This document shows, one piece after another, positions 2 through 59,786 of a stretch of 64,000 nucleotides of DNA. How positions within the stretch are numbered: position 1 is the stretch's first letter; each line of letters starts with the position of its first letter. Both the position numbers and the translations under genes were made by a program. Location: the IMG/VR virus record IMGVR_UViG_3300044638_006750, positions 124,001 to 188,000 of that record, one strand, 5' to 3'. The notes beneath the pieces are model-generated. The model was given only the letters and a program-made list of their open reading frames with translations. It was not told the DNA's origin and made no database searches.

Positions 2-3000
2 ATGTCAATTATAAACAATAAATTTAGAAAATGGTATGGTCAGTCAGTAATTAATAGTACATTTAAACTGAAAGTAGAATTAGTAAATTCATACCCTAAA
101 GGAAATTATGGAAATATCCCAGACCTTCATCTTAAAAATAATAGAGATTTTGATCTATTAAAATCAAATATTGCCAGAAATTCTATTTGTAATTGGGAAA
201 TTATATTAGATACATATAAGACAACAGATGCAACACATAGAAAAGAACAGAGAATAAACATTAATCATACGGCAGCGAATCATATTGACTACACTCGTAC
301 AGATACATCTTTATCCAATACTTCTGGCAGCTATCCAGATGGTTATAATTTTATTGGTGATTTTACTGATCGTAAATTTCTAGTACCTCCAGTAAACATA
401 AATGCTCCGCACCAATATTTAACAGATTACAATTCATGTGTTTATCCTACTCAAGAATATAATAATTTCGGGTTTGCCAGAGTAGAGGACAATGCATTAA
501 GATTTATTTATCAAGCATTTAATCTTTTTTCTGCTGGTATTGGTATGGCAGCTGGTATGGGTGCGATTGGTGGTTTAACAGGTGCGTTTGTCGGAGGAAC
601 TATATTTGGGGCGGCGTCTAGTCTTGCCGTAAATAGCATAGTATCATATTACAATAATGCTAGAAGAACTAGACTAGTAGATGCTTTTGATGATAGTTTC
701 TATGACCCATCGTATGATAATTATGGTTATGGAGTACCAGATAAAGCGCTGATAGAAATTTCAGTAGACGGTGGATATAAATGGTATATATTTGATGCTA
801 AAATTTTCAAATATAACCAGTACTGTTCTCCAGTATATAAGCCTCTTAAAATACAGTACAATGGAGCCGGCCCAGTATCAGAAACTACTTGTTCTAAACT
901 AAGTACGTCTTTGGTCCCAACCACGCCATCGGCAACTTCTCCAATTATTGTCGATCCTAATACTTATAACAATATTACTGGATTGATCCTACCCGCAAAG
1001 AGCATTAAAGCCAAAGAGTTGTATATACATAAAAATATTAGATTATTAAATAATAAACCCAACATAACTAACATTTCTAATGTATTTATAGGTTTTAATA
1101 CATATGATCCGGAAAGCACAGTATGTATCGAGATTCCTCATGTTAAAGCATTTTATTATTTAAAAACTGGTACCATAACAACGAATGCTCAAATAGATAT
1201 CATATATCATGATCAGAATGGTTATGGATATAGAAACTTAATCCAAAAAACAATTAATAATATTGCTATTCTCAATAAAAATAATCAATATAATACATAT
1301 ATTTTATTTAACGATAAAACTCTTAAAAATACTTTAGACAAAAATTTAGATTCTAATATATTAATTCAAAAAAGCAATGCTGAAGATTTATTAGGGGTAG
1401 TTTTGTATAAGGGAGGTAATTTATTTACGGCGGCTAGTGTCAAAGCTTTAATAAACAATAATGTCTTCACGCCGGACTATACTATGCCGGTATATGGAGA
1501 AGGTGCTTGGGGCAGGGGTTCTTCCTCTAACAATCTTTATCCAGCTAAAAAACTTACAATACCTAAAGACTATAGCTTAATTGATTTTGCTAGAGGTTAT
1601 AGTCCAAATAGATATGTTGGACGAATTCAGGTAGGAAATAATTCTCCAATACTAACATCTTCTTTAGAAATAGGTTTGTTCGATAATATCAATGGGTGGC
1701 CGCTATACAAGAATCCAGAAAAATTTAACTTATATTCAATTAGTAGCGACAATAAACAATATCTATATAAAAATATTAGTGATTTAAATTCTATTTTTTA
1801 TTTTTATACAATGACAAGTATAGAAGGTTTAAAAAATAAAGATATGCCGACAGCTGGATCAATTACTTTATTAGACCATTTGATTCCTGCGAAATTGGGT
1901 AGTAGTAGTGGAGGTTTGTCTGGAGCTAAAATAGAAGCTATATATAGCAGTCTAGATGTTGAGGGCGCTAACGGTTGTTTTGGTGGCCACTATTGTAACA
2001 GGGCTAAATTTGATATTTTTGTCAACGGAATATATTTATTTACTGCTAATTTAAATAATTATGAGGAGGGATCTCCGCCTGATCCTCCATTAGATAATGG
2101 CGTAGGACAAGACCCATCAGATAGATATGCTTCTCATATTATCACTGACTCAGAAGCTGCGGCTATAGAGGCTGTTGACCCAGAAAACATATCTATTTCC
2201 TATAGACCAACAGCAGATAATCCCGACCCTCATAATAATATCACTTGGATAAGATTAATTTCTTCATCTGGAGTAGAGATAGCTAGCACTTGTGCTACAG
2301 ATGCTGGACTTAATACAGCAATATTACCATATGATGATAACAAATACTGGATCAGTTTAGATAAAGATCAATATGGAATATATAGTAGAACCACCAGTAT
2401 TAAAGTTTTAAAGAAAATAGAATACATTTGTAGTGAGCCTAGAACCGTTCCTGGCGGACTTAATTGCAACAATATTTGTGGTATTTCTAGAAATTATGGT
2501 AGCAGTATAGGTGTTGGAGATGATGGTGTGACATGGACACCTGCTATTACAACACCAATAGAGCTAATGAAAGTTCAAGCAAAGTCAACGGCTTTTAATC
2601 TGATAGGTGCTCAAGCTGATGGAGACCCGACATTGATATTTACTAATGTCCAAGCAGATGCTCATAAAGCTGCTATAGCACGGAAATATCCTCAAATAGA
2701 GTGGACCGAGATAGTGTTTAATAGGCCAGATGTAAGAATGTCGTGTGGAAACACTAATGGTGATACACTTATGTTTATTAAAGAATATTATTGGATAGCT
2801 AAAAATACAATAGGAGCATCTGGAGGATACGCAGGATTACCAGTCAAAGCATCCGCTCTAATAGCAAATAATACAAATATTAAAGTGAGATTTAGATATA
2901 ATACAAGAAAATTAAGACATGTAGATAATTTTTTTAGAAAATATATCATATCTCCCAATGGAACATACAAAGCCGGCGGTATTGCTGGAACAGACGAGAT

Positions 3001-3478
3001 GCCGATTAAAAATAGTTTTTATACATGGTTTTGTAATTATATAGATAGGGGAACAAGTACTTTGAATACTGTTGTTCCACCATATTATATGATGTTAAAT
3101 GAAATGATATTTAGAGGATTTTTTGGGAGTGCGGATGGTTTAGAAATCAAAGGATCATCATCTAAAACACAATATCCTCATGAATGGATACCTTATGAAT
3201 ACGACAATAGTATTTTTTGTAATAATAATGATGAGGAAAAAAATATTTTTATAGCAGGATTACATAATTTAGATCAATTAGGATATAAATTAAGATGTTG
3301 GTTATTGTCCAAATTAGTCACATCATCATATGATAAAAAAAGAATAGTAAATAGATGTTTAGCATATGTGACTGAGCTTGGAGGACCAGGAATCGTGCCA
3401 GATAAAAAAACATTTGATGTTCTATATGAAACAAATGATCCTAGAATTCAAGAATTAAAAGATACATTTTTAGGATAG
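2..3478 (+). CDS. Large putative virion structural protein (tail/baseplate-associated); 5' end may lie outside the window
   Basis: 1158-aa open frame, N/T/G/Y-rich, with a glycine-rich hydrophobic segment; lies upstream of the T/P-rich protein. Function inferred only. Confidence 0.55.
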   Translation: MSIINNKFRKWYGQSVINSTFKLKVELVNSYPKGNYGNIPDLHLKNNRDFDLLKSNIARNSICNWEIILDTYKTTDATHRKEQRININHTAANHIDYTRTDTSLSNTSGSYPDGYNFIGDFTDRKFLVPPVNINAPHQYLTDYNSCVYPTQEYNNFGFARVEDNALRFIYQAFNLFSAGIGMAAGMGAIGGLTGAFVGGTIFGAASSLAVNSIVSYYNNARRTRLVDAFDDSFYDPSYDNYGYGVPDKALIEISVDGGYKWYIFDAKIFKYNQYCSPVYKPLKIQYNGAGPVSETTCSKLSTSLVPTTPSATSPIIVDPNTYNNITGLILPAKSIKAKELYIHKNIRLLNNKPNITNISNVFIGFNTYDPESTVCIEIPHVKAFYYLKTGTITTNAQIDIIYHDQNGYGYRNLIQKTINNIAILNKNNQYNTYILFNDKTLKNTLDKNLDSNILIQKSNAEDLLGVVLYKGGNLFTAASVKALINNNVFTPDYTMPVYGEGAWGRGSSSNNLYPAKKLTIPKDYSLIDFARGYSPNRYVGRIQVGNNSPILTSSLEIGLFDNINGWPLYKNPEKFNLYSISSDNKQYLYKNISDLNSIFYFYTMTSIEGLKNKDMPTAGSITLLDHLIPAKLGSSSGGLSGAKIEAIYSSLDVEGANGCFGGHYCNRAKFDIFVNGIYLFTANLNNYEEGSPPDPPLDNGVGQDPSDRYASHIITDSEAAAIEAVDPENISISYRPTADNPDPHNNITWIRLISSSGVEIASTCATDAGLNTAILPYDDNKYWISLDKDQYGIYSRTTSIKVLKKIEYICSEPRTVPGGLNCNNICGISRNYGSSIGVGDDGVTWTPAITTPIELMKVQAKSTAFNLIGAQADGDPTLIFTNVQADAHKAAIARKYPQIEWTEIVFNRPDVRMSCGNTNGDTLMFIKEYYWIAKNTIGASGGYAGLPVKASALIANNTNIKVRFRYNTRKLRHVDNFFRKYIISPNGTYKAGGIAGTDEMPIKNSFYTWFCNYIDRGTSTLNTVVPPYYMMLNEMIFRGFFGSADGLEIKGSSSKTQYPHEWIPYEYDNSIFCNNNDEEKNIFIAGLHNLDQLGYKLRCWLLSKLVTSSYDKKRIVNRCLAYVTELGGPGIVPDKKTFDVLYETNDPRIQELKDTFLG

Positions 3479-3483
3479 TTTAA

Positions 3484-5571
3484 ATGTCAACTCCGACACC
3501 TACTGCAACCCCTACTGGCTCGCCTCCTCCTACAGCAACTCCAACGAGAACAGCAACCAGAACGCCAAATAATACTCGTACTGGTACTGCTACTGCTACT
3601 TCTACGCCAACACGAACACCAACTAATACCAATACTTCTACTCCTACCCCTACTCCTACGTCTACTCAGACACCAACACCAACAACAACTCAAACTAGTA
3701 CTCCGACCAGAACTCAAACCAGAACACCTACAAAAACACCCACAGCGACCCCTACTAATACTTCTACTACGACTAAAACACCAACCAATACAAAAACCCC
3801 AACCGCTACAAAAACTTCAACTCCAACAAACACTGCTACCCCATCAAACACGCCAACTAATAGTAAAACTCCAACACAAACATCTACTAGTAATAAAGTT
3901 TATATATGTACTACTAGAACTAATACTCCAACAGGTACTCCAACTCCATCACCCACTAATACAAATACTCCATCGGTTACATCTACCAAGCCACTTAATT
4001 CTAATGAATATTACCTTAGTGATGATCTAAGAAAAATATCTCATGAAAAAGAAACACTACCGACTATTACTGTTTATGTCGATAAAGTTATAGTTGAATG
4101 TTTATGTCTAGACAATCCATTACAAAAAAAGAAATTAGTAAAAGGAGCTTCATTATTTAAGGATGAAATCACTTCTGTTATTTGGTTGATTAGAGAATTT
4201 CAGAATATCCTTGGAACAACTGCAACAGTTTTCTTCTTAAGGGCATTGGATGAAGAAGCAGGAAAAACTGAAATCTATAAGATTGGTGACTCATATGTGC
4301 CAGGACCTATTACTCCTACACCCAAACCAACAGAACCATACGTTTTCATTATTTCAGAAACCCCGACGCCAACACCGAATATTAGTTCTAGTACTATAGT
4401 TTCCGAAGTGATTAGAATATGTCCTACAAATACTCCTACACCATCTATCACTCCTACACAAACACCAACTAATAGTCCAACACCAAGCGCTACTACTACG
4501 AAGACACCCACAAACACCCCAACCAATACAACGTCTAATACTCCAAGCCCTGGCCCCTTACCCATTAAATATTTTATTGGTCCAAGATTAGCTGAAGGCG
4601 AAACATCTCTACAATTCAAAGGTAAATTTGCGTATATGCCATCTGAAGAAGATAGCGGACTGGTTCAGTGGGTCGGTGATACTTTGGAAGGCACAGGTAA
4701 GCTATTAGCTTTAGACCTAAATGGCAATGTAACAACGGTAGAACTATCTAAAAAATATGGTGTTCTCAATGACAGAATTAATCTTCAACCCCCGGCACCT
4801 GATGTAGTAAGAGAAGAGATATTTGTTGAATTAAGATGGCCAGTTAAATGTCAACCAGTAGGTCAGCTTAAAATTCCTTTCAAGGTTGAAAGATATGTTC
4901 CTCCTCCTACACCTTCCCAATCAGTGAGTAGTAGTCCAACTAATACTCCAACACCAAGCATTACAAAAACATCAACACCATCTAACACCCCGTCGAATAC
5001 TGTTACAAAAAGCAATACTCCGACCAATAGTCCGAGTCTGTCTGCTTCTTGTTCATCTAAGCCTACATCAACACCAACACCAAGTGTTTCTATAACGCCC
5101 ACACAAACTTGTAGTAATACTCCCACACCAACACCTACAGAATCTAAATATTCTAATTGTGTTTTAGTTCCAGCGCCCTATCCTGACCCTATAGAATATG
5201 ATGAAGAAACACAAGAATTAATTATTTTAGGAGATGTTAGTTTTACTACTCCAACACCATCTCCGACAGTCACGGGGTCTGTAACACCAACTCCATCGGT
5301 TACTGTGTCTGCAACGCCGACCAATACTCCTACTCCATCAGTTACTAGAACATCTACTCCTTCAGTGACCCCGACCAGAACTCCAACCAATACTCCAACA
5401 AACACTCGGACACCAACTCCTACTAACACTAGTACCCCATCTAATACTTTGACCGTAACACCGACACAGACACCAACCGCCACAGTCACCTATACCAGAA
5501 CTCCGTCACAGACACCAACCAAAACACCGACAGGTACTCCAACAAGCACATATACTCCCACCAGACCATGA
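3484..5571 (+). CDS. Mucin-like Thr/Pro-rich protein (PTxT repeats), putative virion fibre/surface protein
   Basis: 695 aa; several blocks of TPT(x)T repeats separated by non-repetitive segments; no signal peptide evident. Confidence 0.8.
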   Translation: MSTPTPTATPTGSPPPTATPTRTATRTPNNTRTGTATATSTPTRTPTNTNTSTPTPTPTSTQTPTPTTTQTSTPTRTQTRTPTKTPTATPTNTSTTTKTPTNTKTPTATKTSTPTNTATPSNTPTNSKTPTQTSTSNKVYICTTRTNTPTGTPTPSPTNTNTPSVTSTKPLNSNEYYLSDDLRKISHEKETLPTITVYVDKVIVECLCLDNPLQKKKLVKGASLFKDEITSVIWLIREFQNILGTTATVFFLRALDEEAGKTEIYKIGDSYVPGPITPTPKPTEPYVFIISETPTPTPNISSSTIVSEVIRICPTNTPTPSITPTQTPTNSPTPSATTTKTPTNTPTNTTSNTPSPGPLPIKYFIGPRLAEGETSLQFKGKFAYMPSEEDSGLVQWVGDTLEGTGKLLALDLNGNVTTVELSKKYGVLNDRINLQPPAPDVVREEIFVELRWPVKCQPVGQLKIPFKVERYVPPPTPSQSVSSSPTNTPTPSITKTSTPSNTPSNTVTKSNTPTNSPSLSASCSSKPTSTPTPSVSITPTQTCSNTPTPTPTESKYSNCVLVPAPYPDPIEYDEETQELIILGDVSFTTPTPSPTVTGSVTPTPSVTVSATPTNTPTPSVTRTSTPSVTPTRTPTNTPTNTRTPTPTNTSTPSNTLTVTPTQTPTATVTYTRTPSQTPTKTPTGTPTSTYTPTRP
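3487..5568 (+). repeat. Low-complexity degenerate coding repeats (ACN-CCN-ACN) in about four blocks: ~3490-3990, ~4300-4555, ~4900-5150, ~5245-5568
   Basis: Repeats are conserved at protein level (TPT/PTNT/PTRT/PTKT) but synonymous-diverged at DNA level. Confidence 0.8.
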
Positions 5572-7913: not shown

Positions 7914-8382
7914 ATGTTATATTTTCCATAATACCTATTGGTTTATTATTCCAGCAATTACTATAAACATTATATATGTATTGATTTTTAGCTATAATAG
8001 ACAAATTTTGGGTAGGTCCATACAAATGGTTAAGATATAGATAGTTTGCTTCAGTGTTTAGCCACGGAATATCTTTTGCATAAAAATATATCTTATTTAT
8101 ATTTGTAAAGCCCTTTGATATAATAAGAGATTCTGTGTCGGATATCCATAACTTACCATTAAAAAATTTGCACTGAGATATTGGTAAGACTGGCACGTTT
8201 AATCTGTGGGTTATAGAGTTCGTATTGTATGCAAAACACACATACTGGTTAGAATGATCATATTGAATAGCAGTATATATTGTATCATATATGTTTTGAT
8301 ACTCTTGATTATTATTTACAACAAACCCAAAATCACTAATTATTGACATAAAATTCCTTTTTGATATAATCGTTAATATCAA
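7876..8382 (-). CDS. Hypothetical protein (possibly a diverged glycosyltransferase-like fragment)
   Basis: Tightly packed ORF in the operon; no clear motif. Confidence 0.5.
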   Translation of the reverse strand: MILTIISKRNFMSIISDFGFVVNNNQEYQNIYDTIYTAIQYDHSNQYVCFAYNTNSITHRLNVPVLPISQCKFFNGKLWISDTESLIISKGFTNINKIYFYAKDIPWLNTEANYLYLNHLYGPTQNLSIIAKNQYIYNVYSNCWNNKPIGIMENITYENFKKTILDTE

Positions 8383-8971
8383 TAATATCGCTATCCATGT
8401 TATCTACAGCAACCATAGTATCCATGTCGATATATGATGCACCACATAGGAGACTTTCATTTTTATATATATGATTTTTACCAATAATAGATTTATAGGA
8501 TGCTAATATAAAAGCCTTTTGATGTTCTAGTAATGTTCCTAAATTATATGGATTATTGATTTTGCTATTATTAAACATATGTATATCACAATCACTGCGC
8601 ATGGTGAGATCAACAATGTTGGATGGAAGCTCCTCAATATTATCTAGTAATATAGCTCTTTTATTATTTCTGGAGATACTATATTTTTTAAAAATCTCTC
8701 TATTAATTACATGCTTGAAATTATTTAAATCATCTATAATAAATAAATCTTTCATTGCATGGTATTGATTCATAAATGTTTTGATAGCAAAATGTTCTAT
8801 GTCAGACTTAGCTATACAAATTTTATATGGTTTAATAATATCGTATGCTTTAAAAATTTCTTCTACATTTAGAATATAAAAATCCACATATTCGGCATGA
8901 TTTGGTATAGATATTTTAATACTATCTAGTAATCTACTGTTGGTAGTAGAAATAATAATTTTGTGTTTCAT
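8336..8971 (-). CDS. Hypothetical protein
   Basis: 211-aa ORF in a coupled operon. Confidence 0.55.
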   Translation of the reverse strand: MKHKIIISTTNSRLLDSIKISIPNHAEYVDFYILNVEEIFKAYDIIKPYKICIAKSDIEHFAIKTFMNQYHAMKDLFIIDDLNNFKHVINREIFKKYSISRNNKRAILLDNIEELPSNIVDLTMRSDCDIHMFNNSKINNPYNLGTLLEHQKAFILASYKSIIGKNHIYKNESLLCGASYIDMDTMVAVDNMDSDIIDINDYIKKEFYVNN

Positions 8972-8973
8972 TG

Positions 8974-9651
8974 TTATATAAATAATTTTGCTTTATTAAT
9001 ATCTTTAATATTATTAATTTTTGTAATTTGTGATTTAGGAATATAGATATTGTTAAATACTATAGATCTATCCAGTAGTTTATTTACCATCTCAAATAGA
9101 AATAATGTCTTTAATTCATGAGGTAATATGGTTTGTTTAACTAGATCCAAAGCACTGTCTGTTAGATATAAACATTCTGACCATAAAAAGGGTAAATCAT
9201 AGAATAAATATTCTACCTTATCAGGATTTAAACATCCAATGTTGAAATTATTTTTTTTACCCTTGATCAGAAATAGCGTATTCTGTGACGGCTTAAGCAT
9301 TTTACTAAAATTAAATCTGGTAATAATACCATTATTAATAAAAATAGCTCCCTTATTAGATTCTCTTTGTTCAATATAGGACACAATAGATGCTATTTGA
9401 CTACTAGTATCGTACTGTTTATTTTCTAAGAAATGTATATTTTTTTTATGGGCGGATGAAGATATGGTTTTTTTGATTCGTTCTGATTCAAAACCGGTTA
9501 GTAGGTAGATGGGATTGTGCTTATATATGGTTCTAATTAGTTCTATTTGATGTTCTATTAGAGTATATCCCCGTATATTAATTAAAGACTTGGGGCCAAA
9601 TGACTTCATGCCCTTAGTAATTTCAGGAATAATAAAAACTATATCAATCAT
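8974..9651 (-). CDS. Sugar-phosphate nucleotidyltransferase-like protein (NTP_transferase fold, diverged)
   Basis: KGMKSFGPKSLINIRGYTLIEHQI..LLTGFE matches the GxGxRM...PKxL N-terminal signature in degenerate form. Confidence 0.7.
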   Translation of the reverse strand: MIDIVFIIPEITKGMKSFGPKSLINIRGYTLIEHQIELIRTIYKHNPIYLLTGFESERIKKTISSSAHKKNIHFLENKQYDTSSQIASIVSYIEQRESNKGAIFINNGIITRFNFSKMLKPSQNTLFLIKGKKNNFNIGCLNPDKVEYLFYDLPFLWSECLYLTDSALDLVKQTILPHELKTLFLFEMVNKLLDRSIVFNNIYIPKSQITKINNIKDINKAKLFI

Positions 9652-10376
9652 TTATATATTAAATATGGACAGCTTGGATTATCTTGAAAAAATAGTGCGG
9701 TTTCATAAAAGAATTTGGGCTTATCAGATCCAAGAATCTTATATGTATCATATGTCATAAATAATCCATCCAGATTTGTGAGACTAGATAGTCTTATTGC
9801 ATATTTTTGATCAATCACCATATCTATGTGTGCGTTGTTCATTATGTCTTCTAAATTATCCAAGGTATCCTGATTAGATACATACAAAAAACCTTTAGAG
9901 TCATATTTATCCAATAATACATCAACACATGAAATAATAGAAATTGGCTCATCTATATGAGGTAATATTTTACTAGCTTTCCATGGCACCGACAAATGTT
10001 TCTCAAAGGATGCCACCATATCGCCTTCTATTGTTTTACCAAAACACACGACATTTTTCGGCTTAAAAGAAGCATTATTAATACTGTCTATAATAGTTTG
10101 AACAGATTTATTTAAAGTATCAAAATTTAAGACTAGAGTATAATGTATCTGGTTGTTTCGTAATATAATTTCTTTGATTTGTTCTTTATTAATGGACTGT
10201 TGATTTTTTTCTAGTGTTTCACTACCAAAAGCATAAGAACAACTATATGGATGAATAGTATGATTAATACTGTCGATTATGATACTATCATTAGTAATAC
10301 TTTCCGGTATGCCAAACTCACACCACTCATCTTCTGAATAAAAAATACATTTTTTGCAGTATGTTGTGTCCATCAA
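9648..10376 (-). CDS. Hypothetical protein, N-terminal Cys motif
   Basis: CKKC..C..C; ATGA-type coupling with neighbours. Confidence 0.55.
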   Translation of the reverse strand: MMDTTYCKKCIFYSEDEWCEFGIPESITNDSIIIDSINHTIHPYSCSYAFGSETLEKNQQSINKEQIKEIILRNNQIHYTLVLNFDTLNKSVQTIIDSINNASFKPKNVVCFGKTIEGDMVASFEKHLSVPWKASKILPHIDEPISIISCVDVLLDKYDSKGFLYVSNQDTLDNLEDIMNNAHIDMVIDQKYAIRLSSLTNLDGLFMTYDTYKILGSDKPKFFYETALFFQDNPSCPYLIYK

Positions 10377-14066: not shown

Positions 14067-14072
14067 TATACG

Positions 14073-14100
14073 AAAAAGGGCTATGTTATTAGCATAGCCC
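14073..14100 (-). terminator. Intrinsic terminator downstream of ssb
   Basis: Minus strand GGGCTATG-CTAATAA-CATAGCCC-TTTTT: 8-bp perfect stem followed by a U tract. Confidence 0.8.
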
Positions 14101-14129
14101 TGTTTCATTCCACTTCTTATGACGATATC

Positions 14130-14548: not shown

Positions 14549-14576
14549 ATTATAAACACCGTCCCACGCAAGTCAA
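14549..14576 (-). promoter_or_regulatory. Sigma70-like promoter for ssb
   Basis: TTGACT-N16-TATAAT on the minus strand, ~48 nt upstream of the ATG. Confidence 0.7.
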
Positions 14577-25880: not shown

Positions 25881-25883
25881 ATT

Positions 25884-26258: not shown

Positions 26259-26261
26259 AAA

Positions 26262-29078: not shown

Positions 29079-29130
29079 AGTATACCCTTTACTATAGAGT
29101 GTTACGATGTATCGATACCAATTATAGCTT

Positions 29131-29140
29131 AATATACACC
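29131..29140 (-). promoter_or_regulatory. GGTGTAT-type putative phage promoter upstream of phoH
   Basis: GGTGTATATT in the intergenic gap; motif recurs in other gaps. Confidence 0.45.
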
Positions 29141-48243: not shown

Positions 48244-49077
48244 CTAAGACAAAATCTGTTCTATCAGATCGTCAGATATCGCCATTTCTTTATCGCTCGG
48301 GGAGTAGTATTTAGATTCTTCGTTAATCGTGGTATTATCAAAAATCCTATCTATCCACGTAAAACCATACTGATCCTTGTCATATTGAAGAACTGGAGTA
48401 GAATTATGTTCTAAAAAATTTTGATTAGATATTTTTTTCAAAAAATCAAATGATACTTTTTTTTCTAGCCTTTCTGCAATATTTTTAAACATAGCCATAC
48501 TTAATATTCTACAAGGGTGGTTATGAGTAGCAAATAATTTTGTTTTTAAAAAATTTTGATTTATAAAATTACTAACATTTTCATAACTGTGTTTAATTAA
48601 TGATTTATCCAATCTATGTTTAGATTGAATGAAACTATTTCTTGTATCTTCAATAGATTTTTTATATATATGAACAATATCGTATGCATATAATTCCAGC
48701 TCTAAGTTACTCATTCTAATTTCTTTTAGGTCTGAAATGTCAAATGTTTCAAAAAAGTTATTTGGAATATTTTTGTCTGTATTTAAAATTTGATAATTTT
48801 TTATAGTTTCTGTAATAATTAAATCTGTTTTCTGTAAAATGTTACGAATATCAGAGATCGGAAAAAGATAATTTTTCTCTGCATTCCATTTCTGTCCCCA
48901 AAACGGAGTATAAATACAATAAATGTTAAACTCTGGAAAAAGTAAACTTAAATAATACATTATTGGAGTTGTTCTACAGCTTCCCAAAAATAAAATATTT
49001 CTAGGTCCACACCCTTTATAAATCATGAAATTATTGCTAGCATTTAATTCACTAAGTTTCGCAGCGAGTATTATCAT
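48244..49077 (-). CDS. WcbI-like polysaccharide biosynthesis protein
   Basis: ILFLGSC, KLFATHNHP. Confidence 0.55.
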   Translation of the reverse strand: MIILAAKLSELNASNNFMIYKGCGPRNILFLGSCRTTPIMYYLSLLFPEFNIYCIYTPFWGQKWNAEKNYLFPISDIRNILQKTDLIITETIKNYQILNTDKNIPNNFFETFDISDLKEIRMSNLELELYAYDIVHIYKKSIEDTRNSFIQSKHRLDKSLIKHSYENVSNFINQNFLKTKLFATHNHPCRILSMAMFKNIAERLEKKVSFDFLKKISNQNFLEHNSTPVLQYDKDQYGFTWIDRIFDNTTINEESKYYSPSDKEMAISDDLIEQILS

Positions 49078-49721
49078 TGAATTAAATTTAAAATTTCTTT
49101 ATATTTGTTTGTTTTTAAAGTATTACAACTTGATGATGAGAAGTGTATTAATTTCCCTATTTTTGGATAATTAGCTACAAGATTTAAACTTTTATAATCT
49201 GTTTTACGGTTAGATAACATAATCATATCTGATGTATGTTCTTTATTATTTATAAGATGAATGTCTATTGGTTTTAGAACCATAAATGATTTCAACATAT
49301 TAAAATAATCTTCAGATCTACCAGACACTACACAAGGGACATGTCCCTGATAAATAGTTAATTCTGTGAAATCAAAAAAATTTATATCTTCTTGAAATGT
49401 ATTATTTATTACATCATAATCAATCATTACTCCTCCTCCTATGTTAGCCATTGCTAACCATCTCATATAACAATGATAGTCGTAGGACGAAGGATTGATG
49501 CTTGGGAATGTTTTTATTATTGTTGAATACTCATTATATAAAGGATGAGACAAAGCGTCTTTTTCGGATATTATCTTCAGTTCCCATCCATGATTTAGCC
49601 AAGATTTTGCACATAGCTCTATTAAAGACTCTTGAGAATATTCTTTTGCAGGCCGATGTTCGATCTCGGGTACAACTTCATAATATGTATAGATAATATT
49701 ATTTTTTGTGCAGTATTGCAT
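49074..49721 (-). CDS. Putative DxD glycosyltransferase
   Basis: KSW..HGWE, CYMRWLAM..GG.MIDYDV. Confidence 0.55.
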   Translation of the reverse strand: MQYCTKNNIIYTYYEVVPEIEHRPAKEYSQESLIELCAKSWLNHGWELKIISEKDALSHPLYNEYSTIIKTFPSINPSSYDYHCYMRWLAMANIGGGVMIDYDVINNTFQEDINFFDFTELTIYQGHVPCVVSGRSEDYFNMLKSFMVLKPIDIHLINNKEHTSDMIMLSNRKTDYKSLNLVANYPKIGKLIHFSSSSCNTLKTNKYKEILNLIQ

Positions 49722-50949
49722 AGTTATATTTTTCTTTTAGTTCTGTGATCGGCATATTTCTATTCTCTTCACTATTTAAACTTAAATTAACAATCAATGT
49801 TGTATACACATATTGTTTTTTTATATAGTTCCATAATATTTTATTGTGTTTAGATGATTCTCTATCAAAATGATAATGCATTACTAATTTAAGCAAATAG
49901 TCGTATGGCATGTCTGGACTATGATATTTAATATACTCTGGCATTACAGACTTACAAAACTGCATATATTCCTGAAATAAAGGATTTCCAGTAGCATATA
50001 TAGAAGTTCCTCCATTAATATGGCTATTTAATAAGGACGAATATGATTCATTACTAACGCCATCATACTGAGAACCAGAAATTAAAAAAGGTTGGGATGA
50101 ACAGTATTTAACCAGTCTATCTAACCACTTATCAGATAGATAACAGTCGCACTCCAACAATAAGCTAGAGTTGTATTTTCTTAACAAATCCATAACTGCA
50201 AAGAAAACATAGTTTGGACCCGATTTATATCCGTATAGAGGGATTACATTTTCATCACAATCAGAATTTTTTCCCCAATAAATATCTAAGTCTTGAGGGA
50301 TATCTAAATAAATAATCTCTAAATGTTTAAATTTGTTTTTTAAATTATTGATACCATTATTGTTTTCATAAAATTGTTGATCATATTTTTTATTAGCTAT
50401 AATTATTAAATCTATATTTTTTGACAAATCGGCATTGGTGTTTTTATCTATCTGGTCTAAGAAATTAAGATATGAGTTATCGGTAATTTCTTGTTCACCT
50501 GTTGCCAGTAAACAAATACATTCTAGGTTATTTTCATAGTGTTTAATGCTATCAAGCGAACAATACTGAGAGATATCTTTAAATAATCTAGTATCTTCTT
50601 TATTGACTTCAAAATATGACAATATATGATCATTTGTAATTAAAGTTTTATCTATTTCATTAAAATCTTTTTTTAAGTTATTAATAATTTGTTTAATATT
50701 ATGATATTTTTTTTCATATAATTGAATTAGAGTATAATAATACCATTCTGAAAATTCAATATTCTTGCTTTCCAACACTAAATTAATTTTTTCATCAATA
50801 TTATCTATCAGTTCTGAGAGTTTGTAGTATGGCCAAGACTGATTGGGGTTTAAATTAATAGCTTTATATAATAGTTCTTTAGCTATTTCTGGTTGATTAT
50901 TTTTAATACACAGCATTGCAGCTTTAGCGTATTCTTCCCAATTATTCAT
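49699..50949 (-). CDS. TPR + putative glycosyltransferase-like domain protein
   Basis: N-terminal TPR (LYKAINLNP), LLECDC. Confidence 0.5.
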   Translation of the reverse strand: MNNWEEYAKAAMLCIKNNQPEIAKELLYKAINLNPNQSWPYYKLSELIDNIDEKINLVLESKNIEFSEWYYYTLIQLYEKKYHNIKQIINNLKKDFNEIDKTLITNDHILSYFEVNKEDTRLFKDISQYCSLDSIKHYENNLECICLLATGEQEITDNSYLNFLDQIDKNTNADLSKNIDLIIIANKKYDQQFYENNNGINNLKNKFKHLEIIYLDIPQDLDIYWGKNSDCDENVIPLYGYKSGPNYVFFAVMDLLRKYNSSLLLECDCYLSDKWLDRLVKYCSSQPFLISGSQYDGVSNESYSSLLNSHINGGTSIYATGNPLFQEYMQFCKSVMPEYIKYHSPDMPYDYLLKLVMHYHFDRESSKHNKILWNYIKKQYVYTTLIVNLSLNSEENRNMPITELKEKYNYAILHKK

Positions 50950-53104
50950 TATATCTTTCTATATTAGAGATGCCTAAATTTTTGATAATATCTAAGAATT
51001 TTTTTTGATTAATAGCTTGAAATTTTTTAGTGCCTTTTAAAATATCTGTTCCGCTAGAGGAACCCTCGTCGTGAATAGCCTCGCATCTTGGATCATATAT
51101 GGTTTTTAATCCATAAAAATGAGCCCTGTACTGCCATTCACTATCTTCATAATACATAGAATCTAATTCATGGCTAAAAACACCTATTTTATTAATTGCT
51201 CCTCTTTTCATATATAATAAACATCCTGAGCAATATCCAGTATATTTAGGAATATTATATTTATAAGTTTTAGGATGGTCATATCTACCTTTATTCAAAC
51301 CAGTACCATCACTGTATAACTCTGCTCCAGCTTCAGCTAGTCTTCCGTCAGGATATATTGTTTTACCTCCAGCCGCCGCTATATAATCTGCTATATATGC
51401 GCTAGAATATAAATAATTTAACCAATATTTATCTATAATTTCAATATCATCATTAATTAATAATATATCTGACTCTTTGTATCTTGGATCAAGCATAATC
51501 TTATTATTTGGAATAATAAAATATTCATTTTGATTGTTTTTTATATATTCAATAGTATTAGGATATATTTGAACATATTTTTTTAATAGTCTCTCGGTTT
51601 CTTTATTTGTTCCATTATCTGTAACTACAATTTTATAATTTAAATAAGATGTTTTTTGTAAAATAGAATCTATACATTTACGTAATTTTTTGGGTTGATT
51701 ATATGTAACTATACTAATTGTAACTTGTTTATCTTGTAGCGTGTGTTTGAGAACATTGATAGCAGACTCTTTGGATACTATTTTATCTAGATGTTCTTTC
51801 CCGGCCTCACCCAGCTGTATTTTTTGTTTATTTTTAAGACTAAAATAGTACTGTAGACCATCTATAAATTCAAAATTAGATTCTGCTATAATAGCATGGT
51901 TTTTATGTATAAAATTAATACCTTCGTTTCCTATACTGGAAGTTATAATAGGAATGCCACTCATACCAGCATCACATATTTTCCCTTTTATGCCTGCTCC
52001 CCAATTTAGAGGAGCAATTAATATACTTGTTTTTTTATATACATCAGAAATTTTTTCTATACAACCCAAGTATTCTATAGAAGGATCAGAAGAGATATTA
52101 TCTTGTATTGTTTTATCTAAATTTGGACCAATAAGTAATAGTTTTGGTTTTATTTTAAGATTATTGTATATATTAGTTAGTTGAAAACTTTTAAAAATTT
52201 CTATAGATCTAATAGCACCATCTAGATTGGGACCATGGGCGTAATTTCCTATAAAAACTATATTATTCCCTAGTTTACAAGTATGTTTGTGATGAATATT
52301 GCTTAATATTTTAATGTTATGATTATATCCTATTTCATCTTGTATATATTCTTTATCTTTTTCTGTAACGGCAAAAATTACATTAGCAGATAAATATACT
52401 TGTTTTTCTATTTTTTTACGAACATCAAGAATGGATTGTTGTATATTTAAGTGTCCAGAGTCCTTTCCTCGCTGTTCTCTAATCCAGTGTACATCAACAG
52501 TATCTATAATAATTTTAATATTTGGATAATATTTTTTTACGATGTCAAGATATTGATTAGCTATATCATACCAAGAAAAAATTACATTGTCAAAAACAAT
52601 ATTTGATTTTTTAGCTTTTTTTAAATATGTGTCTAAGTATATTTGTTTGTCTATGTCTGGCAAAAAATATGGTATTTTTATAGCGTCTAGAGCATCTAGA
52701 TATTTTTTTTTAGAGGATCCATTACAAAGAAACCAGACATTATATTGCAGATCTATTTTTAATATTTTAAGTATCTCTAATAATCTATTGCCTCCGCTGC
52801 TGGTGTCGTAGTCTGGCGCCATTGGCGAAAAATATAATAGATTTTTACCATTATTCCAAATTTCTGGCACCAGTTCATGTGATGAAACGGTCTCTGAAAA
52901 CGATGGAACAATTTTTTTGTAAGCTCTATTCTCTTTACGTCCATATAAAATATAATGTTCTTTAGCCTTTTGTTCATCGTCTATACCGGCGACTATGAGG
53001 TCAGGATGTAACAGCGTATAAATAATAGGATCAAAATCTTTAGGTAGCAAAAATCCATATTGCTCAACAACTCTTTTGGTATATGTATTTGAAACCCATC
53101 TCAT
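50942..53104 (-). CDS. GT4 + GT2 fusion glycosyltransferase
   Basis: FDP..Y...HPD..HY..YGRKE repeat motif; PLNWGAGIKGK; IVTYN..LLINDD..YEDSE. Confidence 0.85.
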   Translation of the reverse strand: MRWVSNTYTKRVVEQYGFLLPKDFDPIIYTLLHPDLIVAGIDDEQKAKEHYILYGRKENRAYKKIVPSFSETVSSHELVPEIWNNGKNLLYFSPMAPDYDTSSGGNRLLEILKILKIDLQYNVWFLCNGSSKKKYLDALDAIKIPYFLPDIDKQIYLDTYLKKAKKSNIVFDNVIFSWYDIANQYLDIVKKYYPNIKIIIDTVDVHWIREQRGKDSGHLNIQQSILDVRKKIEKQVYLSANVIFAVTEKDKEYIQDEIGYNHNIKILSNIHHKHTCKLGNNIVFIGNYAHGPNLDGAIRSIEIFKSFQLTNIYNNLKIKPKLLLIGPNLDKTIQDNISSDPSIEYLGCIEKISDVYKKTSILIAPLNWGAGIKGKICDAGMSGIPIITSSIGNEGINFIHKNHAIIAESNFEFIDGLQYYFSLKNKQKIQLGEAGKEHLDKIVSKESAINVLKHTLQDKQVTISIVTYNQPKKLRKCIDSILQKTSYLNYKIVVTDNGTNKETERLLKKYVQIYPNTIEYIKNNQNEYFIIPNNKIMLDPRYKESDILLINDDIEIIDKYWLNYLYSSAYIADYIAAAGGKTIYPDGRLAEAGAELYSDGTGLNKGRYDHPKTYKYNIPKYTGYCSGCLLYMKRGAINKIGVFSHELDSMYYEDSEWQYRAHFYGLKTIYDPRCEAIHDEGSSSGTDILKGTKKFQAINQKKFLDIIKNLGISNIERYNE

Positions 53105-53784
53105 ATGATTAAATCAGTATTGTAAAAATTTTGCAATAATTGAATTTCGTATTTAATTTTATTACATATTATGTTTTTTACTTTGTCTCCTATTATAGAA
53201 TCAGAATCAACAGGAGACCTATTCATATGGTGATTAGTAATATGTAGTTGAAACGGATTTGAGTCATTAAAAATTTCACAAAGTTTTTGATTTTCTACCT
53301 GAAAAATAAAGTTATATTTTTTAAGTTCTTCTATAGCAATCTCATATTTTTCTTTTAAAGATTTTTCTTTATATTTCACATTAGTTAAATATTCTATAGT
53401 CATATTGCCAAATCTGTCTAAGTAATTATTAAGCAAATTTTCTGAAAGGTTGTCTATGTGTTGACCATAAAAATAATGAATGTGGCTTATCACTCGTTTA
53501 ACAGGATCTCTGATAGTCAGTATTCTGTATGTGTCTTCTATAGAAAGCTTAAAAATATCTTCTATATAATAGCTGGGACTATGGTCTATGAACATCAGAG
53601 TATCAGAGTGAATTGTGTCTATTAAATGAGGTTGTTCATATAAACACATATTTCCATGAGTAAATTGCGAGATATATGCTGGGGCTTGTTGAAAATGTTC
53701 GTTGTTCTTATAGCCTTCATAAAATCCTCTTTTAAGACTGGACCCTCCACATCTGGGAATATGATTTAAAACTAAGTATTTCAT
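53101..53784 (-). CDS. PAPS-dependent sulfotransferase (Sulfotransfer_2-like)
   Basis: HIPRCGGSS (5'-PSB), IRDPVKRVIS (3'-PB). Confidence 0.8.
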   Translation of the reverse strand: MKYLVLNHIPRCGGSSLKRGFYEGYKNNEHFQQAPAYISQFTHGNMCLYEQPHLIDTIHSDTLMFIDHSPSYYIEDIFKLSIEDTYRILTIRDPVKRVISHIHYFYGQHIDNLSENLLNNYLDRFGNMTIEYLTNVKYKEKSLKEKYEIAIEELKKYNFIFQVENQKLCEIFNDSNPFQLHITNHHMNRSPVDSDSIIGDKVKNIICNKIKYEIQLLQNFYNTDLII

Positions 53785-53788
53785 ATGT

Positions 53789-54541
53789 TTAGTTACAAAT
53801 TAGATTATTAATTAATAGTTTAGATAAAGGAACATCTTTATTGCAGACATACGAGTCTGAGCAATGATGTATGACACAATTGGGATCAATTAGCGAAAAA
53901 CTATAGTGTAATAAATTCCTAGAATAATATCCTTGAGGAATATTATAGTAAAGCAATCCTTCAGCCGATGATTCTAATATACCCTCATGTTTGCCTGTTC
54001 CAGCATATTCTTTTGAAGCTGGACATGAAAGATATTCTTTCATCATTATTTTATCCATAATATACATTGCTTGATGATTTTCTGGTAAATTAATATAATT
54101 TGATTTGTATTTTTTAATATCTCTAATGGAGTAAGTCCTGGTTATATCTGTTAAATACCATCTGTTTTGCAAATGCTCTACCCTGATGAATCCGGGAAAA
54201 AATCTTTTATCATCTATTTCTTGTCTATGATATAACCAATAATCTATATTATTCTGATCGATAACTACATCGTCTTCTGTATATATAAAATGTGTGTATG
54301 ATGAGTCATCATAATATTTTTGCATTACTGGAATATGTTTCCACGGTAAATGGAACGGGTGTTCTAGCTCTCCAACATAATAATATTCGGTATTTGGATT
54401 ATTGCATATAACAGTTATATCTATATTATATGACGTATTTTGTAATTTATTTATCACACGTTCTAAAAATTTTTTTCTTTCTTCTCTGTAATAGAAAGTT
54501 ATTACACAGGCTATTTTATCCGCCATACCAGTATCTTCCAT
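53789..54541 (-). CDS. Putative GT-A glycosyltransferase
   Basis: FIYTEDD motif. Confidence 0.5.
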   Translation of the reverse strand: MEDTGMADKIACVITFYYREERKKFLERVINKLQNTSYNIDITVICNNPNTEYYYVGELEHPFHLPWKHIPVMQKYYDDSSYTHFIYTEDDVVIDQNNIDYWLYHRQEIDDKRFFPGFIRVEHLQNRWYLTDITRTYSIRDIKKYKSNYINLPENHQAMYIMDKIMMKEYLSCPASKEYAGTGKHEGILESSAEGLLYYNIPQGYYSRNLLHYSFSLIDPNCVIHHCSDSYVCNKDVPLSKLLINNLICN

Positions 54542-55403
54542 TCTCTATTTTATTAGCATTATTTGGAATCAAATGTTCTGGAATTTCTGTAATCCAATAA
54601 TCTTTTGGCTTTCCACCAGAATCAATACCAAATAGTTTTTGTATACCAGAACCCATATGTATAGCATCTATATTAAAAGAATGAATATAGTCTGTTAGAA
54701 TACACCCCATTGGACCACATCCCACAAAAGCTATATCAAAACTACCTAGCAATGAATCAATTTGCTCTTTCATTATCTTTATATCTGTTAAATAATTGTC
54801 GTGTGATCCATTATTAAAAAATGTAAAAGGAGTTTTTATTCCAATCATATTTTTTATAGTACTCATTGATGGATATATTTTTTTTAAATTACCAGAAAAA
54901 TATTGATCTAGCATCAAATCAGAAAAACCATTAATAATTAATACTCTTTTATTATCTAATAATGGTAATATGGGGGTATAAATACACCAATAGTCTTTGT
55001 ATTGATCTAGTTCTGATTTATAAATATTGATTAAATTGGTTGAGCAGACCACTTCGTTCTCGATTGCAAAATTTGTTAGTATGGTTTTATATGGTTCTTT
55101 TAGTAAAAATCCATGAATAAATATATGCCAGTATGTAGCTTTATGTATTGATTGTTGACACATATTCAAAAATTGATTATACACATCACTATTTTTTACT
55201 GATTCAGTATCTATATCAAAATATGTTCCACCAATAGTTTTATCATAAAATCCTGTAGAACTGTATAACCAATTAATAAATTGATTTTCTAAATCAGTAA
55301 TCATTATTTTATCTATTGAATTATCATATTTTTTAGACTTTAAGAGATGTCTACAAAACATAACGGTTGTTTCTGTGTTTCCGGGTCTGGTGAGTTTTAA
55401 CAT
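54516..55403 (-). CDS. Conserved glycan-locus hypothetical protein (GT-D-like)
   Basis: KRVLII, FDIAFVGCG..G, AIHMGSG.QKLFGI. Confidence 0.5.
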   Translation of the reverse strand: MLKLTRPGNTETTVMFCRHLLKSKKYDNSIDKIMITDLENQFINWLYSSTGFYDKTIGGTYFDIDTESVKNSDVYNQFLNMCQQSIHKATYWHIFIHGFLLKEPYKTILTNFAIENEVVCSTNLINIYKSELDQYKDYWCIYTPILPLLDNKRVLIINGFSDLMLDQYFSGNLKKIYPSMSTIKNMIGIKTPFTFFNNGSHDNYLTDIKIMKEQIDSLLGSFDIAFVGCGPMGCILTDYIHSFNIDAIHMGSGIQKLFGIDSGGKPKDYWITEIPEHLIPNNANKIENGRYWYGG

Positions 55404-55405
55404 AA

Positions 55406-56188
55406 TTATTTACAGTTTAATTGATATAATGATATATTGATATCTAAAATATTTGTACGCAGTGGAACCTCATGAATTTCTGCATCATGATGGTTGTGAT
55501 ATATAGTAAAAGCATCTGGATGATTAATGCCAGATTTATAAAAACGATCAATAATTGGATAATAACTATAGTATCCGTTTGGTTTAACTGCCTCAGCAAA
55601 TTTACGATCCCCTACTACTTCTCCTCTGAGATATCCAAATTTTTCCCATATATGTCGAGGAACGGCGAACTCTGTACAATTAAGCCAATGTACCTTTTGT
55701 ATTAAATGCCAATCTTCTATATTCTTTTCAATATTTCTACATGTAGACAAAGCTGATCCGCCATAAGCTTTTTGATCATCTTTTATAAAAGATTCATATA
55801 GTGTTTCATAAAATAATAGATAGTCTTTAGCTAATACCGCATCATCTTCAGTAAAAATTACATAGTCGCTATGCTGGAAACACTCATCAATTAAGATTTT
55901 TGCTCCTTTATATGGTCCAACATTATTATTAGATAATTTAATTATTATATTTTTATATAAGTATTTTTTCTGTTCTTTATAGCTATAAATATAGTTAATC
56001 ACATGTTTATTTGCAGCATACCAATGACTCCTATTGTTATAGGACATATTATGAGTATTGTCAATAAAAAAAACAAGAGTATATTTTTCTTTTCCTATAC
56101 ACTTTTCTAAAGACGCGAGCAAATCTTGAAGTGTGTCTATTTTTACAAAACACTGTATTCCTATTACGTAATTATTTTGTTGTTGCAT
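55406..56188 (-). CDS. GT-A glycosyltransferase
   Basis: LVFFID, VIFTEDD. Confidence 0.6.
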   Translation of the reverse strand: MQQQNNYVIGIQCFVKIDTLQDLLASLEKCIGKEKYTLVFFIDNTHNMSYNNRSHWYAANKHVINYIYSYKEQKKYLYKNIIIKLSNNNVGPYKGAKILIDECFQHSDYVIFTEDDAVLAKDYLLFYETLYESFIKDDQKAYGGSALSTCRNIEKNIEDWHLIQKVHWLNCTEFAVPRHIWEKFGYLRGEVVGDRKFAEAVKPNGYYSYYPIIDRFYKSGINHPDAFTIYHNHHDAEIHEVPLRTNILDINISLYQLNCK

Positions 56189-57173: not shown

Positions 57174-57194
57174 AGTATTAACACCATTAAATTT

Positions 57195-59777: not shown

Positions 59778-59786
59778 TATTTTTAT

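Follow-up and report, generated by a model that had tools for sequence, protein, structure and literature searches.

A Thr/Pro-repeat protein of a freshwater jumbo phage as a candidate glycosylated virion fibre protein

Does a protein that consists mostly of Thr/Pro repeats serve as an acceptor for glycosylation encoded by the phage itself? The question arose for an ORF in a 64,000-nucleotide stretch of DNA (the window; positions 124,001 to 188,000 of the IMG/VR record IMGVR_UViG_3300044638_006750) from the 232.7-kb genome of a freshwater jumbo phage, which is uncultured and known only from lake metagenomes. A first-pass annotation made from the sequence alone had described the ORF product as a mucin-like PTxT-repeat protein without signal peptide, conserved as protein but diverged as DNA, and had inferred a glycosylated bottle-brush fibre or shield of the virion, noting that PTxT repeats of this kind are O-GlcNAc sites of GT60 enzymes. 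The description proved to be correct, while the interpretation is only partly supported by our data.

The ORF lies exactly at 3484-5571 on the + strand and encodes 695 aa without stops. It contains 183 Thr (26.3 %), 108 Pro (15.5 %) and 69 Ser (9.9 %). Four T/P/S-rich blocks cover 457 aa (T 36 %, P 19 % and S 13 %), so that the protein meets the compositional definition of a mucin-like domain, and the remaining 238 residues, in three non-repetitive segments, have T 7 % and P 8 %. The parts of the gene are as follows.

3484..5571 (+), the whole ORF of 695 aa, a beads-on-a-string protein with four (TPTx)n blocks and three non-repetitive segments; its start is translationally coupled to the upstream giant ORF (AGGA 8 nt before the ATG, 5-nt gap)
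3484..4005 (+), PT block 1 (aa 1-174); aa 1-~135 are absent from the orthologue P0024
4006..4344 (+), segment d1 (aa 175-287), a small 'YYLSDD' module absent from P0024; a paralogue forms the C-terminal tip of the phage's 2219-aa RCC1/LamG protein (32 % identity, E 3e-5) and a similar module is in the metagenomic protein P0008
4345..4572 (+), PT block 2 (aa 288-363)
4573..4887 (+), segment d2 (aa 364-468), predicted as all-beta in a low-confidence model; the conserved core shared with P0024 and P0025 (64-65 % identity)
4888..5163 (+), PT block 3 (aa 469-560), which aligns with the block of the orthologue without gaps, so the length is conserved
5164..5223 (+), short conserved segment d3 (aa 561-580, NCVLVPAPYPDPIEYDEETQ)
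5224..5571 (+), PT block 4 (aa 581-695) plus the stop codon; absent from P0024

Thr recurs with a strict period of 2, the observed/expected ratio being 2.0-2.1 at lags 2, 4, 6 and 8 and 0.13-0.15 at odd lags. Pro peaks at lags 4 and 8, which gives the unit T-P-T-x, where x is mostly N, S, R, A, Q or K. The N-terminus starts directly with MSTPTPTATPTGSPPP, so there is no hydrophobic core of a signal peptide. The repeats are maintained at the protein level while the DNA is fully randomised, as the protein has 117 repeated peptide 5-mers but only 2 repeated 15-nt words, against 1.7 +/- 1.4 in 500 synonymous-codon shuffles. Tandem Repeats Finder detected only short weak arrays, and antisense ORFs across the repeats are at most 114 aa long. 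The gene is real: its syntenic orthologue P0024 (in locus L376) is 61 % identical over aa 359-584 without a single gap and follows an orthologue of the upstream giant ORF that is itself 62 % identical. Pieces identical to the gene occur in several independent lake metagenomes. When contigs from lake metagenomes were aligned with the gene, many joints appeared inside the PT blocks, but these are cross-matches between repeats and not real length variants.

Homology searches with the target returned little. Megablast of the first 12 kb of the window against GenBank phages gave no match, and Pfam and PHROGs gave no Pfam hit and only a low-complexity PHROG hit (phrog_15511), i.e. no homology to known fibre, spike or decoration families. 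A word-indexed homologue search over aa 175-470 returned mostly compositional hits; the metagenomic protein P0001 and the protein P0002 scored well in HMMER, but BLASTP found no real alignment. A scan of IMG/VR with d1 found no relative. An exhaustive HMMER search with d2 found only two true relatives, the rest being weak multi-stretch hits to repeat proteins that have no Pfam family. AlphaFold2 models of d1 (pLDDT 44) and d2 (three-sequence alignment, pLDDT 52, all-beta) were too poor for a fold search, and the ESM Atlas search with d2 gave no usable hit.

In the next step, we inspected the surroundings of the gene. The ORF is the penultimate gene of the + strand virion module, which starts with terminase and portal, and is co-oriented with the tail genes. 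The features relevant here are listed below.

2..3478 (+), C-terminal 1158 aa of a 2266-aa ORF (genome 120678-127478), the giant gene just upstream in the virion module, 62 % identical to the ORF upstream of P0024
5582..6016 (+), last gene of the + strand module, 144 aa, Cys-rich, with weak matches to DUF6171 and phrog_13558
8336..10376 (-), three small genes downstream of the target; the outer two (211 and 242 aa) share the GT60 presence/absence profile and the middle one is weakly MobA-like nucleotidyltransferase
12771-14108, a core GT1 gene
48244..60344 (-), a low-GC (0.28) sugar cassette with a GT1+GT2 fusion, a sulfotransferase-like gene, a GDP-mannose-dehydratase-like gene, an epimerase and a methyltransferase; nearly all of its genes are absent from five complete relatives
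61233..62891 (+), HtrL_YibB-like protein (552 aa, PF09612), probably a GT-A-type transferase, always found with a full-length GT60
62863..64000 (+), GT60 glycosyltransferase by family match (PF11397), 425 aa, running past the window end to genome 188140

All 14 ORFs with PT segments of 20 aa or more lie in the virion module and none on the replication/metabolism strand. They carry RCC1-like propellers, a LamG lectin fold and tail-fibre/head-decoration-type modules. The target is not a special acceptor but the richest of 14 proteins with the same spacers. It is also poorly conserved, being absent from five complete relatives and half as long in its only syntenic orthologue. The absence of any structural-protein family match, the patchy presence and the variable length could suggest that the ORF is not a virion component but a non-structural or accessory protein, for example a scaffold or an assembly or decoy protein, that happens to lie at the end of the structural operon. 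We regard this as unlikely, because the gene is coupled to and syntenic with the giant structural ORF and its d1 module is shared with the tip of the RCC1/LamG protein of the same module. High variability is typical of distal fibre genes.

The GT60 gene implied by the annotation does exist. It matches PF11397 with 252.8 bits against a cut-off of 21 (E values of 8.8e-75 and 6e-75 were obtained), with profile positions 1-44 and 97-351 matched. It has no N-terminal membrane anchor. An invariant LDSHHRF (D102-S-H104) and later invariant His residues are present in five phage sequences, although their correspondence to the metal-binding DxH/DxD motif of GT-A enzymes rests only on analogy with GT27/GT60. 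A PDB sequence search with GT60 found no relative, and a complex prediction with a 40-aa PT peptide returned no answer, which is evidence neither for nor against binding.

We then asked whether T/P-rich proteins co-occur with GT60 across related phages, a check that the first-pass annotation had proposed. Within the TerL family, counting only records that cover the GT60 neighbourhood, the GT60-positive genomes G000 (the phage studied here), G003, G005, G007, G019, G020, G021 and G025 have 79, 88, 32, 24, 43, 30, 28 and 23 TPTxTPT matches, whereas the GT60-negative genomes G001, G002, G004, G006, G010 and G011 have 0. This perfect split of 8 versus 6 has a probability of 1/3003 (Fisher's exact test, not corrected for phylogeny). 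The apparent exception G012, with 170 repeat matches and no GT60, was rejected because this record, like G009, G013, G016 and G017, lacks a highly conserved core gene that lies about 6 kb from GT60 in complete genomes and so does not cover the region. On the other hand, one 181-kb GT60-positive fragment (G022, 54 % complete) has no match. A tree of 46 core genes gave ((G000+,G002-),((G001-,G004-),(G003+,G005+))) with SH-aLRT of at least 97 on every branch, so GT60 and the repeats changed together at least twice. The TerL tree of 18 genomes is star-like and its well-supported branches force only one change; independent-pairs analysis could not reach significance (one pair on supported branches, five on the best tree), so the number of truly independent contrasts is small. 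Only 8 of 247 ORFs of G000 are shared with G003 and G005 only, and GT60 and its HtrL neighbour are two of them. We also looked for an orthologous head protein that gains a PT spacer only in GT60-positive genomes, but the pattern was not clean.

Lineages with no detectable TerL similarity also combine GT60 with the repeats, namely XacN1 (51 matches), Xoo-sp13 (51), G018 (59), G023 (51), G026 (596), G039 (103) and G066 (165, with an atypical fused GT60). Of 48 IMG/VR records picked only for a TPTxTPTxTPT pattern, 17 carry GT60 although most are fragments. All four cultured phages, the Xanthomonas jumbo phage XacN1, Xoo-sp13 and Stenotrophomonas CM1 and RAS14, have a GT60 homologue (48-53 % identity), and in XacN1 and Xoo-sp13 we also found an HtrL_YibB-like gene nearby. 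In XacN1 the repeats lie in hypothetical proteins next to tail genes, with PT segments in ORF232-237, ORF369-372, ORF325 and ORF384, its virions contain at least two glycoprotein bands stained by periodic acid-Schiff, and its ORF334 is the GT60 homologue (PMC5852040). However, the authors did not link the glycoproteins to PT repeats or to ORF334 specifically. These phages differ from ours in an unrelated terminase, much larger genomes (with 50 % GC in XacN1) and a carbamoyltransferase that follows GT60 instead of methyltransferases.

The co-occurrence is not universal. Five complete unrelated phages (G038, G051, G052, G065 and G077) have 3-41 TPTxTPT matches but no GT60, GT2 or GT1, so the spacers do not generally need a phage transferase and can work unglycosylated or with host enzymes. 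The blocks could thus be plain extended spacers, with GT60 and its partner acting on phage DNA, the host envelope or host proteins, and the association reflecting shared ancestry or a shared host. The same architecture is common in metagenomic proteins (P0001, P0004 and P0008), phage glycosyltransferases often act on DNA or on the host envelope, and the literature stresses DNA and serotype roles for them (PMC12619734). We consider this alternative less likely, though it is the strongest of those we examined, because the association is all-or-none within one phage family across at least two supported changes, recurs in lineages with unrelated terminases, and is accompanied by heavy enrichment of GT60 among the pattern-selected records. 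Moreover, GT60-positive genomes carry far more repeats (23-596) than the exceptions without GT60, and the characterised members of GT60 are polypeptide transferases.

Another possibility is that the spacers are glycosylated by a different enzyme, either the core GT1, the strain-specific GT1+GT2 cassette or a host enzyme. The genome holds several other transferases and sugar-nucleotide enzymes, and relatives with poly-Thr spacers instead of TPTx carry their own clade-specific GT2 genes. However, the GT1 is present in all six complete genomes, including those without any repeats, the cassette is specific to this genome although G003 and G005 also have the repeats, and only GT60 and the HtrL-like gene track the repeats. 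We regard this possibility as improbable.

Regarding the nature of the protein, we propose that it is a modular protein of the tail/fibre module, in which the small modules d1, d2 and d3, presumably folded, are strung on long extended spacers. These spacers, here and in 13 other virion-module proteins, would be O-glycosylated on Thr in the host cytoplasm before or during assembly. The phage's own soluble GT60, a putative polypeptide GlcNAc transferase, would initiate the glycan, and the adjacent HtrL_YibB-like enzyme and two methyltransferases would extend or tailor it. The result would be stiff, protease-resistant, mucin-like stalks that hold adhesin-type modules away from the particle. The sequence anatomy, the position in the virion module, the presence of GT60 and the co-occurrence are established by our analysis, whereas the incorporation into virions, the modification itself, the transfer activity of GT60 towards these repeats, the sugar and the function are inferred, and we give this reading a probability of roughly 0.55. 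Published reviews confirm that GT60 enzymes start mucin-type O-GlcNAc glycosylation of Thr/Ser-rich domains in Dictyostelium and Trypanosoma cruzi (PMC8724618, PMC3188802), and a TPTxT-type domain of T. cruzi gp72 is discussed as the likely site of its dense phosphoglycosylation (PMC3630849). The specific claim of the first-pass annotation about PTVT repeats of Dictyostelium PsA rests on that annotation alone. Acceptor specificity cannot be transferred from the protist enzymes by homology alone.

Compared with these protist systems, the enzyme family is the same and the presumed acceptors are likewise Thr/Pro-rich, repetitive and intrinsically extended. The protist enzymes are, however, Golgi type II membrane proteins acting on secreted or GPI-anchored mucins, while the phage enzyme has no anchor and would have to act in the bacterial cytoplasm on virion proteins lacking signal peptides, more like the cytoplasmic GT60 member Gnt1. 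In mycobacteriophages, phage-encoded transferases decorate virion proteins in the cytoplasm (Freeman et al. 2023, as cited in PMC12619734), but there the glycans reportedly sit on the C-termini of capsid and tail-tube subunits, the transferases are not known to belong to GT60, and no long (TPTx)n arrays or multi-module fibre proteins are reported to be involved. The Pro/Thr linkers of bacterial and fungal glycoside hydrolases, for example Cellulomonas cellulases, are also extended spacers between folded modules and are often O-glycosylated in the native host. Those are secreted proteins with short linkers (20-40 aa) modified by host enzymes, whereas here the blocks reach 174 aa, make up 66 % of the protein and co-vary with a virus-encoded transferase. 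Our case probably adds a further form to the already known glycosylation of phage virions.

Glycosylation of phage particles has so far been shown in only a few cases, and its acceptor rules are largely unknown; for one of the cultured Xanthomonas and Stenotrophomonas phages, XacN1, virion LC-MS/MS data are already public (ProteomeXchange PXD008065, named in PMC5852040). If these Thr/Pro arrays are GT60 substrates, glycosylated virion proteins could be predicted from sequence alone, the huge low-complexity content of jumbo-phage fibre genes would have an explanation, and there would be a soluble mucin-type glycosylation module compatible with the bacterial cytoplasm, consisting of an enzyme and a simple acceptor tag, of interest to glyco-engineers. 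More tentatively, several lineages of jumbo phages may run their own cytoplasmic mucin-type O-glycosylation, in which a conserved pair of GT60 and HtrL_YibB-like genes, with variable tailoring enzymes, coats (TPTx)n spacers in many virion fibre proteins, and different spacer dialects (TPTx versus poly-Thr) are matched to different sets of phage transferases. This would make phages the first users in the prokaryotic world of the enzyme family that starts mucin-type glycosylation in protists, and the finding also bears on where the protist GT60 family came from.

The window covers bases 124001-188000 of a 232,683-bp IMG/VR virus record, which is rated as complete by CheckV. The observation made in the first-pass annotation held, as the ORF was found exactly where it had been placed:
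3484-5571 (+), ORF of 695 aa without stops
The protein contains 26.3% Thr, 15.5% Pro and 9.9% Ser. Four blocks (aa 1-174, 288-363, 469-560 and 581-695; 457 aa in total) consist of 36% Thr, 19% Pro and 13% Ser, while the remaining 238 residues are ordinary, with 7% Thr and 8% Pro. Within the blocks Thr recurs with a strict period of 2, the observed/expected ratio being about 2.0-2.1 at even lags and 0.13-0.15 at odd lags, and Pro peaks at lags 4 and 8. The unit is therefore T-P-T-x, with x mainly N, S, R, A, Q or K. The N-terminus begins directly with the repeat and has no hydrophobic signal-peptide core. The annotation had also claimed that the repeats are kept at the protein level but not at the DNA level, and this is right: we counted 117 repeated peptide 5-mers but only 2 repeated 15-nt words, which is what 500 synonymous-codon shuffles give (1.7 +/- 1.4). 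Tandem Repeats Finder reported only short, weak arrays, so the arrays are not recent slippage products.

On the minus strand, the phage encodes a DnaE-like DNA polymerase split into two ORFs, a DnaB helicase, a primase, a UvsX-like recombinase and a ribonucleotide reductase. The polymerase region is arranged as follows:
14573-16189 (-) and 17066-18943 (-), two ORFs matching the C- and N-terminal halves of the DnaE-like polymerase profile (phrog_405)
16191-16895 (-), ORF of 234 aa lying between them
A long + strand module starts with terminase and portal and runs through giant ORFs of 4284, 2266, 2219, 1923 and 1763 aa. The 695-aa ORF is a real gene and the penultimate one of this virion module. 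Its ATG lies 5 nt after the stop of the 2266-aa ORF, with an AGGA 8 nt upstream, and no promoter- or terminator-like site was found between the two genes.

To identify relatives, we ran an exhaustive HMMER search with one of the non-repetitive segments:
4573-4887, segment d2 (searched as aa 360-470)
The search found two true relatives, the proteins P0024 and P0025, at 64-65% identity. P0024 lies on a 6.3-kb contig directly downstream of an ORF that is 62% identical to the ORF upstream of our gene, and it aligns with residues 359-584 at 61% identity and with zero gaps, so the third repeat block (PT block 3) has the same length in both. However, P0024 is only 328 aa long and lacks the first ~135 residues of PT block 1, the non-repetitive module d1 and PT block 4. 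Five complete relatives with terminases about 80% identical have no orthologue at all, and a scan of IMG/VR with d1 found none. Module d1 has a paralogue at the C-terminal tip of the phage's own 2219-aa protein (32% identity, E 3e-5) and resembles a 'YYLSDD' module in the metagenomic beads-on-a-string protein P0008. Segment d2 contains a motif (EGETSLQFKGKF...VQWVGDTLEGTGKL) that weakly resembles a tandem repeat unit in the signal-peptide-bearing metagenomic proteins P0028 and P0031, which have no Pfam family. The gene is thus a fast-evolving, module-shuffling gene, and we infer that it resembles distal fibre genes in this respect. A non-virion role of the protein seems unlikely.

Look-ups of sequencing runs place the gene in lake and freshwater metagenomes, and pieces identical to it occur in several independent samples. 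When lake-metagenome contigs were aligned to the gene, the summed depth over the PT blocks (window 3520-3940, 4350-4560, 4870-4975 and 5290-5500) rose 5- to 15-fold above the flanks. This is caused by partial matches from many other contigs, and TPTx-coding DNA therefore seems to be very abundant in these lakes.

The ORF is not unique within its genome. Fourteen ORFs have T/P/S-rich segments of 20 aa or more, and the 695-aa ORF is the richest of them. All lie in the + strand virion module (genome 55.5-129.6 kb) and none among the replication and metabolism genes. The others carry RCC1-like beta-propellers, a LamG/ConA-like lectin domain and modules labelled by PHROGs as tail fibre, head decoration or virion structural protein. 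The picture is of adhesin-like modules joined by long TPTx spacers.

Regarding glycosylation genes, the 3′ end of the window holds a GT60 gene (PF11397, 253 bits against a cut-off of 21; 425 aa in the genome). The protein has no N-terminal anchor. Five phage homologues share an invariant LDSHHRF motif, which we read, by analogy only, as the DxH metal site of GT27/GT60 enzymes. Just upstream is a gene for a 552-aa HtrL_YibB-like protein (PF09612), whose Atlas clusters are almost wholly viral, with some members also matching GT2. Downstream are an FkbM-type methyltransferase and a gene with a weak, sub-threshold match to CmcI-type methyltransferases. Elsewhere the window has a GT1 that is conserved in all six complete genomes of the family, and a sugar cassette:
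48244-60344 (-), 12-kb low-GC (0.28) island with a GT1+GT2 fusion, a sulfotransferase-like gene, a GDP-mannose-dehydratase-like gene, an epimerase and a methyltransferase
Nearly all genes of this island are absent from the five complete relatives, so it looks like a strain-specific glycan-diversity cassette. Glycosylation of the spacers by an enzyme other than GT60 is considered improbable.

The co-occurrence of T/P-rich proteins with GT60 in related phages had been proposed beforehand as a test of the glycosylation idea. A search with the terminase finds hundreds of relatives in IMG/VR (385 confirmed with this terminase), of which we retrieved five complete genomes (G001-G005) for comparison with the genome studied here (G000). 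GT60 is present in G003 and G005 and absent from G001, G002 and G004. The DNA pattern for TPTxTPT occurs 79, 88 and 32 times in the three GT60+ genomes (G000, G003 and G005) and not once in the three GT60- genomes. We then extended the comparison to more records, keeping only those that demonstrably cover the GT60 neighbourhood, i.e. hold a conserved 333-aa core gene about 6 kb away. In this set the GT60+ genomes G000, G003, G005, G007, G019, G020, G021 and G025 have 23-88 matches, while the GT60- genomes G001, G002, G004, G006, G010 and G011 all have 0. A perfect split of 8 versus 6 would have a probability of 1/3003 if the genomes were independent, which they are not. The record G012 appeared to be an exception (170 matches, no GT60), but it lacks the core gene and is simply truncated, as are G009, G013, G016 and G017.

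The terminase tree was star-like and not decisive. However, a tree of 46 concatenated core genes for the six complete genomes was fully supported, ((G000+,G002-),((G001-,G004-),(G003+,G005+))), where the signs denote GT60, and the gene and the repeats therefore changed together at least twice. An unbiased presence/absence profile gave the same answer, as only 8 of 247 G000 ORFs are present in G003 and G005 alone, and GT60 and its HtrL-like neighbour are two of them, at 64-72% identity. Two small genes of unknown function, 3-5 kb downstream of the 695-aa ORF and flanking a weakly MobA-like nucleotidyltransferase gene, show the same profile:
8336-8971 (-), small gene present only in G003 and G005
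9648-10376 (-), small gene present only in G003 and G005
The HtrL-like gene is present in 13 of 13 other records with a full-length GT60, always within about 15 kb of it, and is absent from 11 of 11 records without GT60 and from the three with an atypical or partial GT60. The GT60-less relatives G001 (locus L104, 17520-19046 (-) and 228271-229905) and G004 (23806-29939 and 38103-50768) use a different spacer 'dialect', poly-Thr units such as TTTTTDAP or PEPTTTTTT. They also share four clade-specific GT2-family genes, one directly beside a poly-Thr protein, while G002 has neither kind of spacer. This suggests that spacer type and transferase set are matched.

Among cultured phages, GT60 homologues were found in only four, Xanthomonas XacN1 and Xoo-sp13 and Stenotrophomonas CM1 and RAS14. 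XacN1 and Xoo-sp13 show no terminase similarity to this family, yet each has 51 TPTxTPT matches against 0 in the reversed-pattern control. In XacN1 the repeats sit in a paralogous set of hypothetical proteins (ORF232-237) and in large ORFs beside the tail-sheath genes (ORF369-372), and ORF330 is HtrL_YibB-like. At least two Schiff-stained glycoprotein bands were reported in XacN1 virions, without being identified (PMC5852040). In these Xanthomonas jumbo phages the gene after GT60 encodes a 765-aa carbamoyltransferase (XacN1 219791-222088, locus L374; Xoo-sp13 223218-225515, locus L375) rather than methyltransferases, which hints at a differently tailored glycan on the same kind of module. Other unrelated GT60+ records (G018, G023, G026, G039, and G066, whose GT60 is an atypical fused form) have 51-596 matches. 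Some large IMG/VR phages, G026, G028 (54.2-56.7 kb) and G058, have about 590 TPTxTPT matches, including kilobase-long uninterrupted arrays; G026 and G028 carry two adjacent GT60 copies, while G058 (61% complete) shows no GT60.

In the reverse direction, we chose 48 IMG/VR records only for a TPTxTPTxTPT pattern, and 17 of them carry GT60 although most are small fragments. In the same sample, however, five complete phages have TPTxTPT repeats but no GT60, no GT2 and no GT1, namely G038 with 11 matches, the provirus G051 with 41, G052 with 16, G065 with 20 and G077 with 3. Moreover, one 181-kb GT60+ fragment, G022, has no match. So these spacers can exist without a phage transferase, and the association is strong, and quantitative in that GT60+ genomes carry many more repeats, but it is not universal. 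That the blocks are plain unglycosylated spacers, with GT60 acting elsewhere, remains a possible though less likely reading.

Phage virion glycosylation is already known for mycobacteriophages, on the C-termini of capsid and tail-tube subunits (cited in PMC12619734), and was hinted at for XacN1. We found no paper that links phage GT60 genes to Thr/Pro repeat arrays, although the literature searched was limited and this is absence of evidence only. The single ORF is of moderate interest, and the genome-wide and cross-lineage pattern to which it points, which can be tested in cultured phages, is more interesting.

The interpretation in the first-pass annotation, a glycosylated virion fibre or shield, is only partly supported. 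The anatomy of the repeats, the position of the gene in the virion module and the co-occurrence with GT60 come directly from the sequences, whereas the presence of the protein in virions, its modification, the activity of GT60 on it and the sugar are inferred. In protists, GT60 enzymes start mucin-type O-GlcNAc on Thr/Ser-rich domains (PMC8724618, PMC3188802). A Thr/Pro-rich domain of T. cruzi gp72 (PTVTPTPPLTPTPTPEVTPTPTV...) closely resembles the spacers described here, and its authors discuss it as the likely site of dense phosphoglycosylation (PMC3630849). For the annotation's more specific statement on PTVT repeats of Dictyostelium PsA, no confirmation was found in the papers searched. 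With the protist data in agreement, the best reading, to which we assign a probability of about 0.55, is that the ORF encodes a virion-module fibre or decoration protein, whose TPTx spacers, like those of 13 sister proteins, would be cytoplasmic acceptors for the phage GT60, with the HtrL-like enzyme and methyltransferases building on the first sugar.
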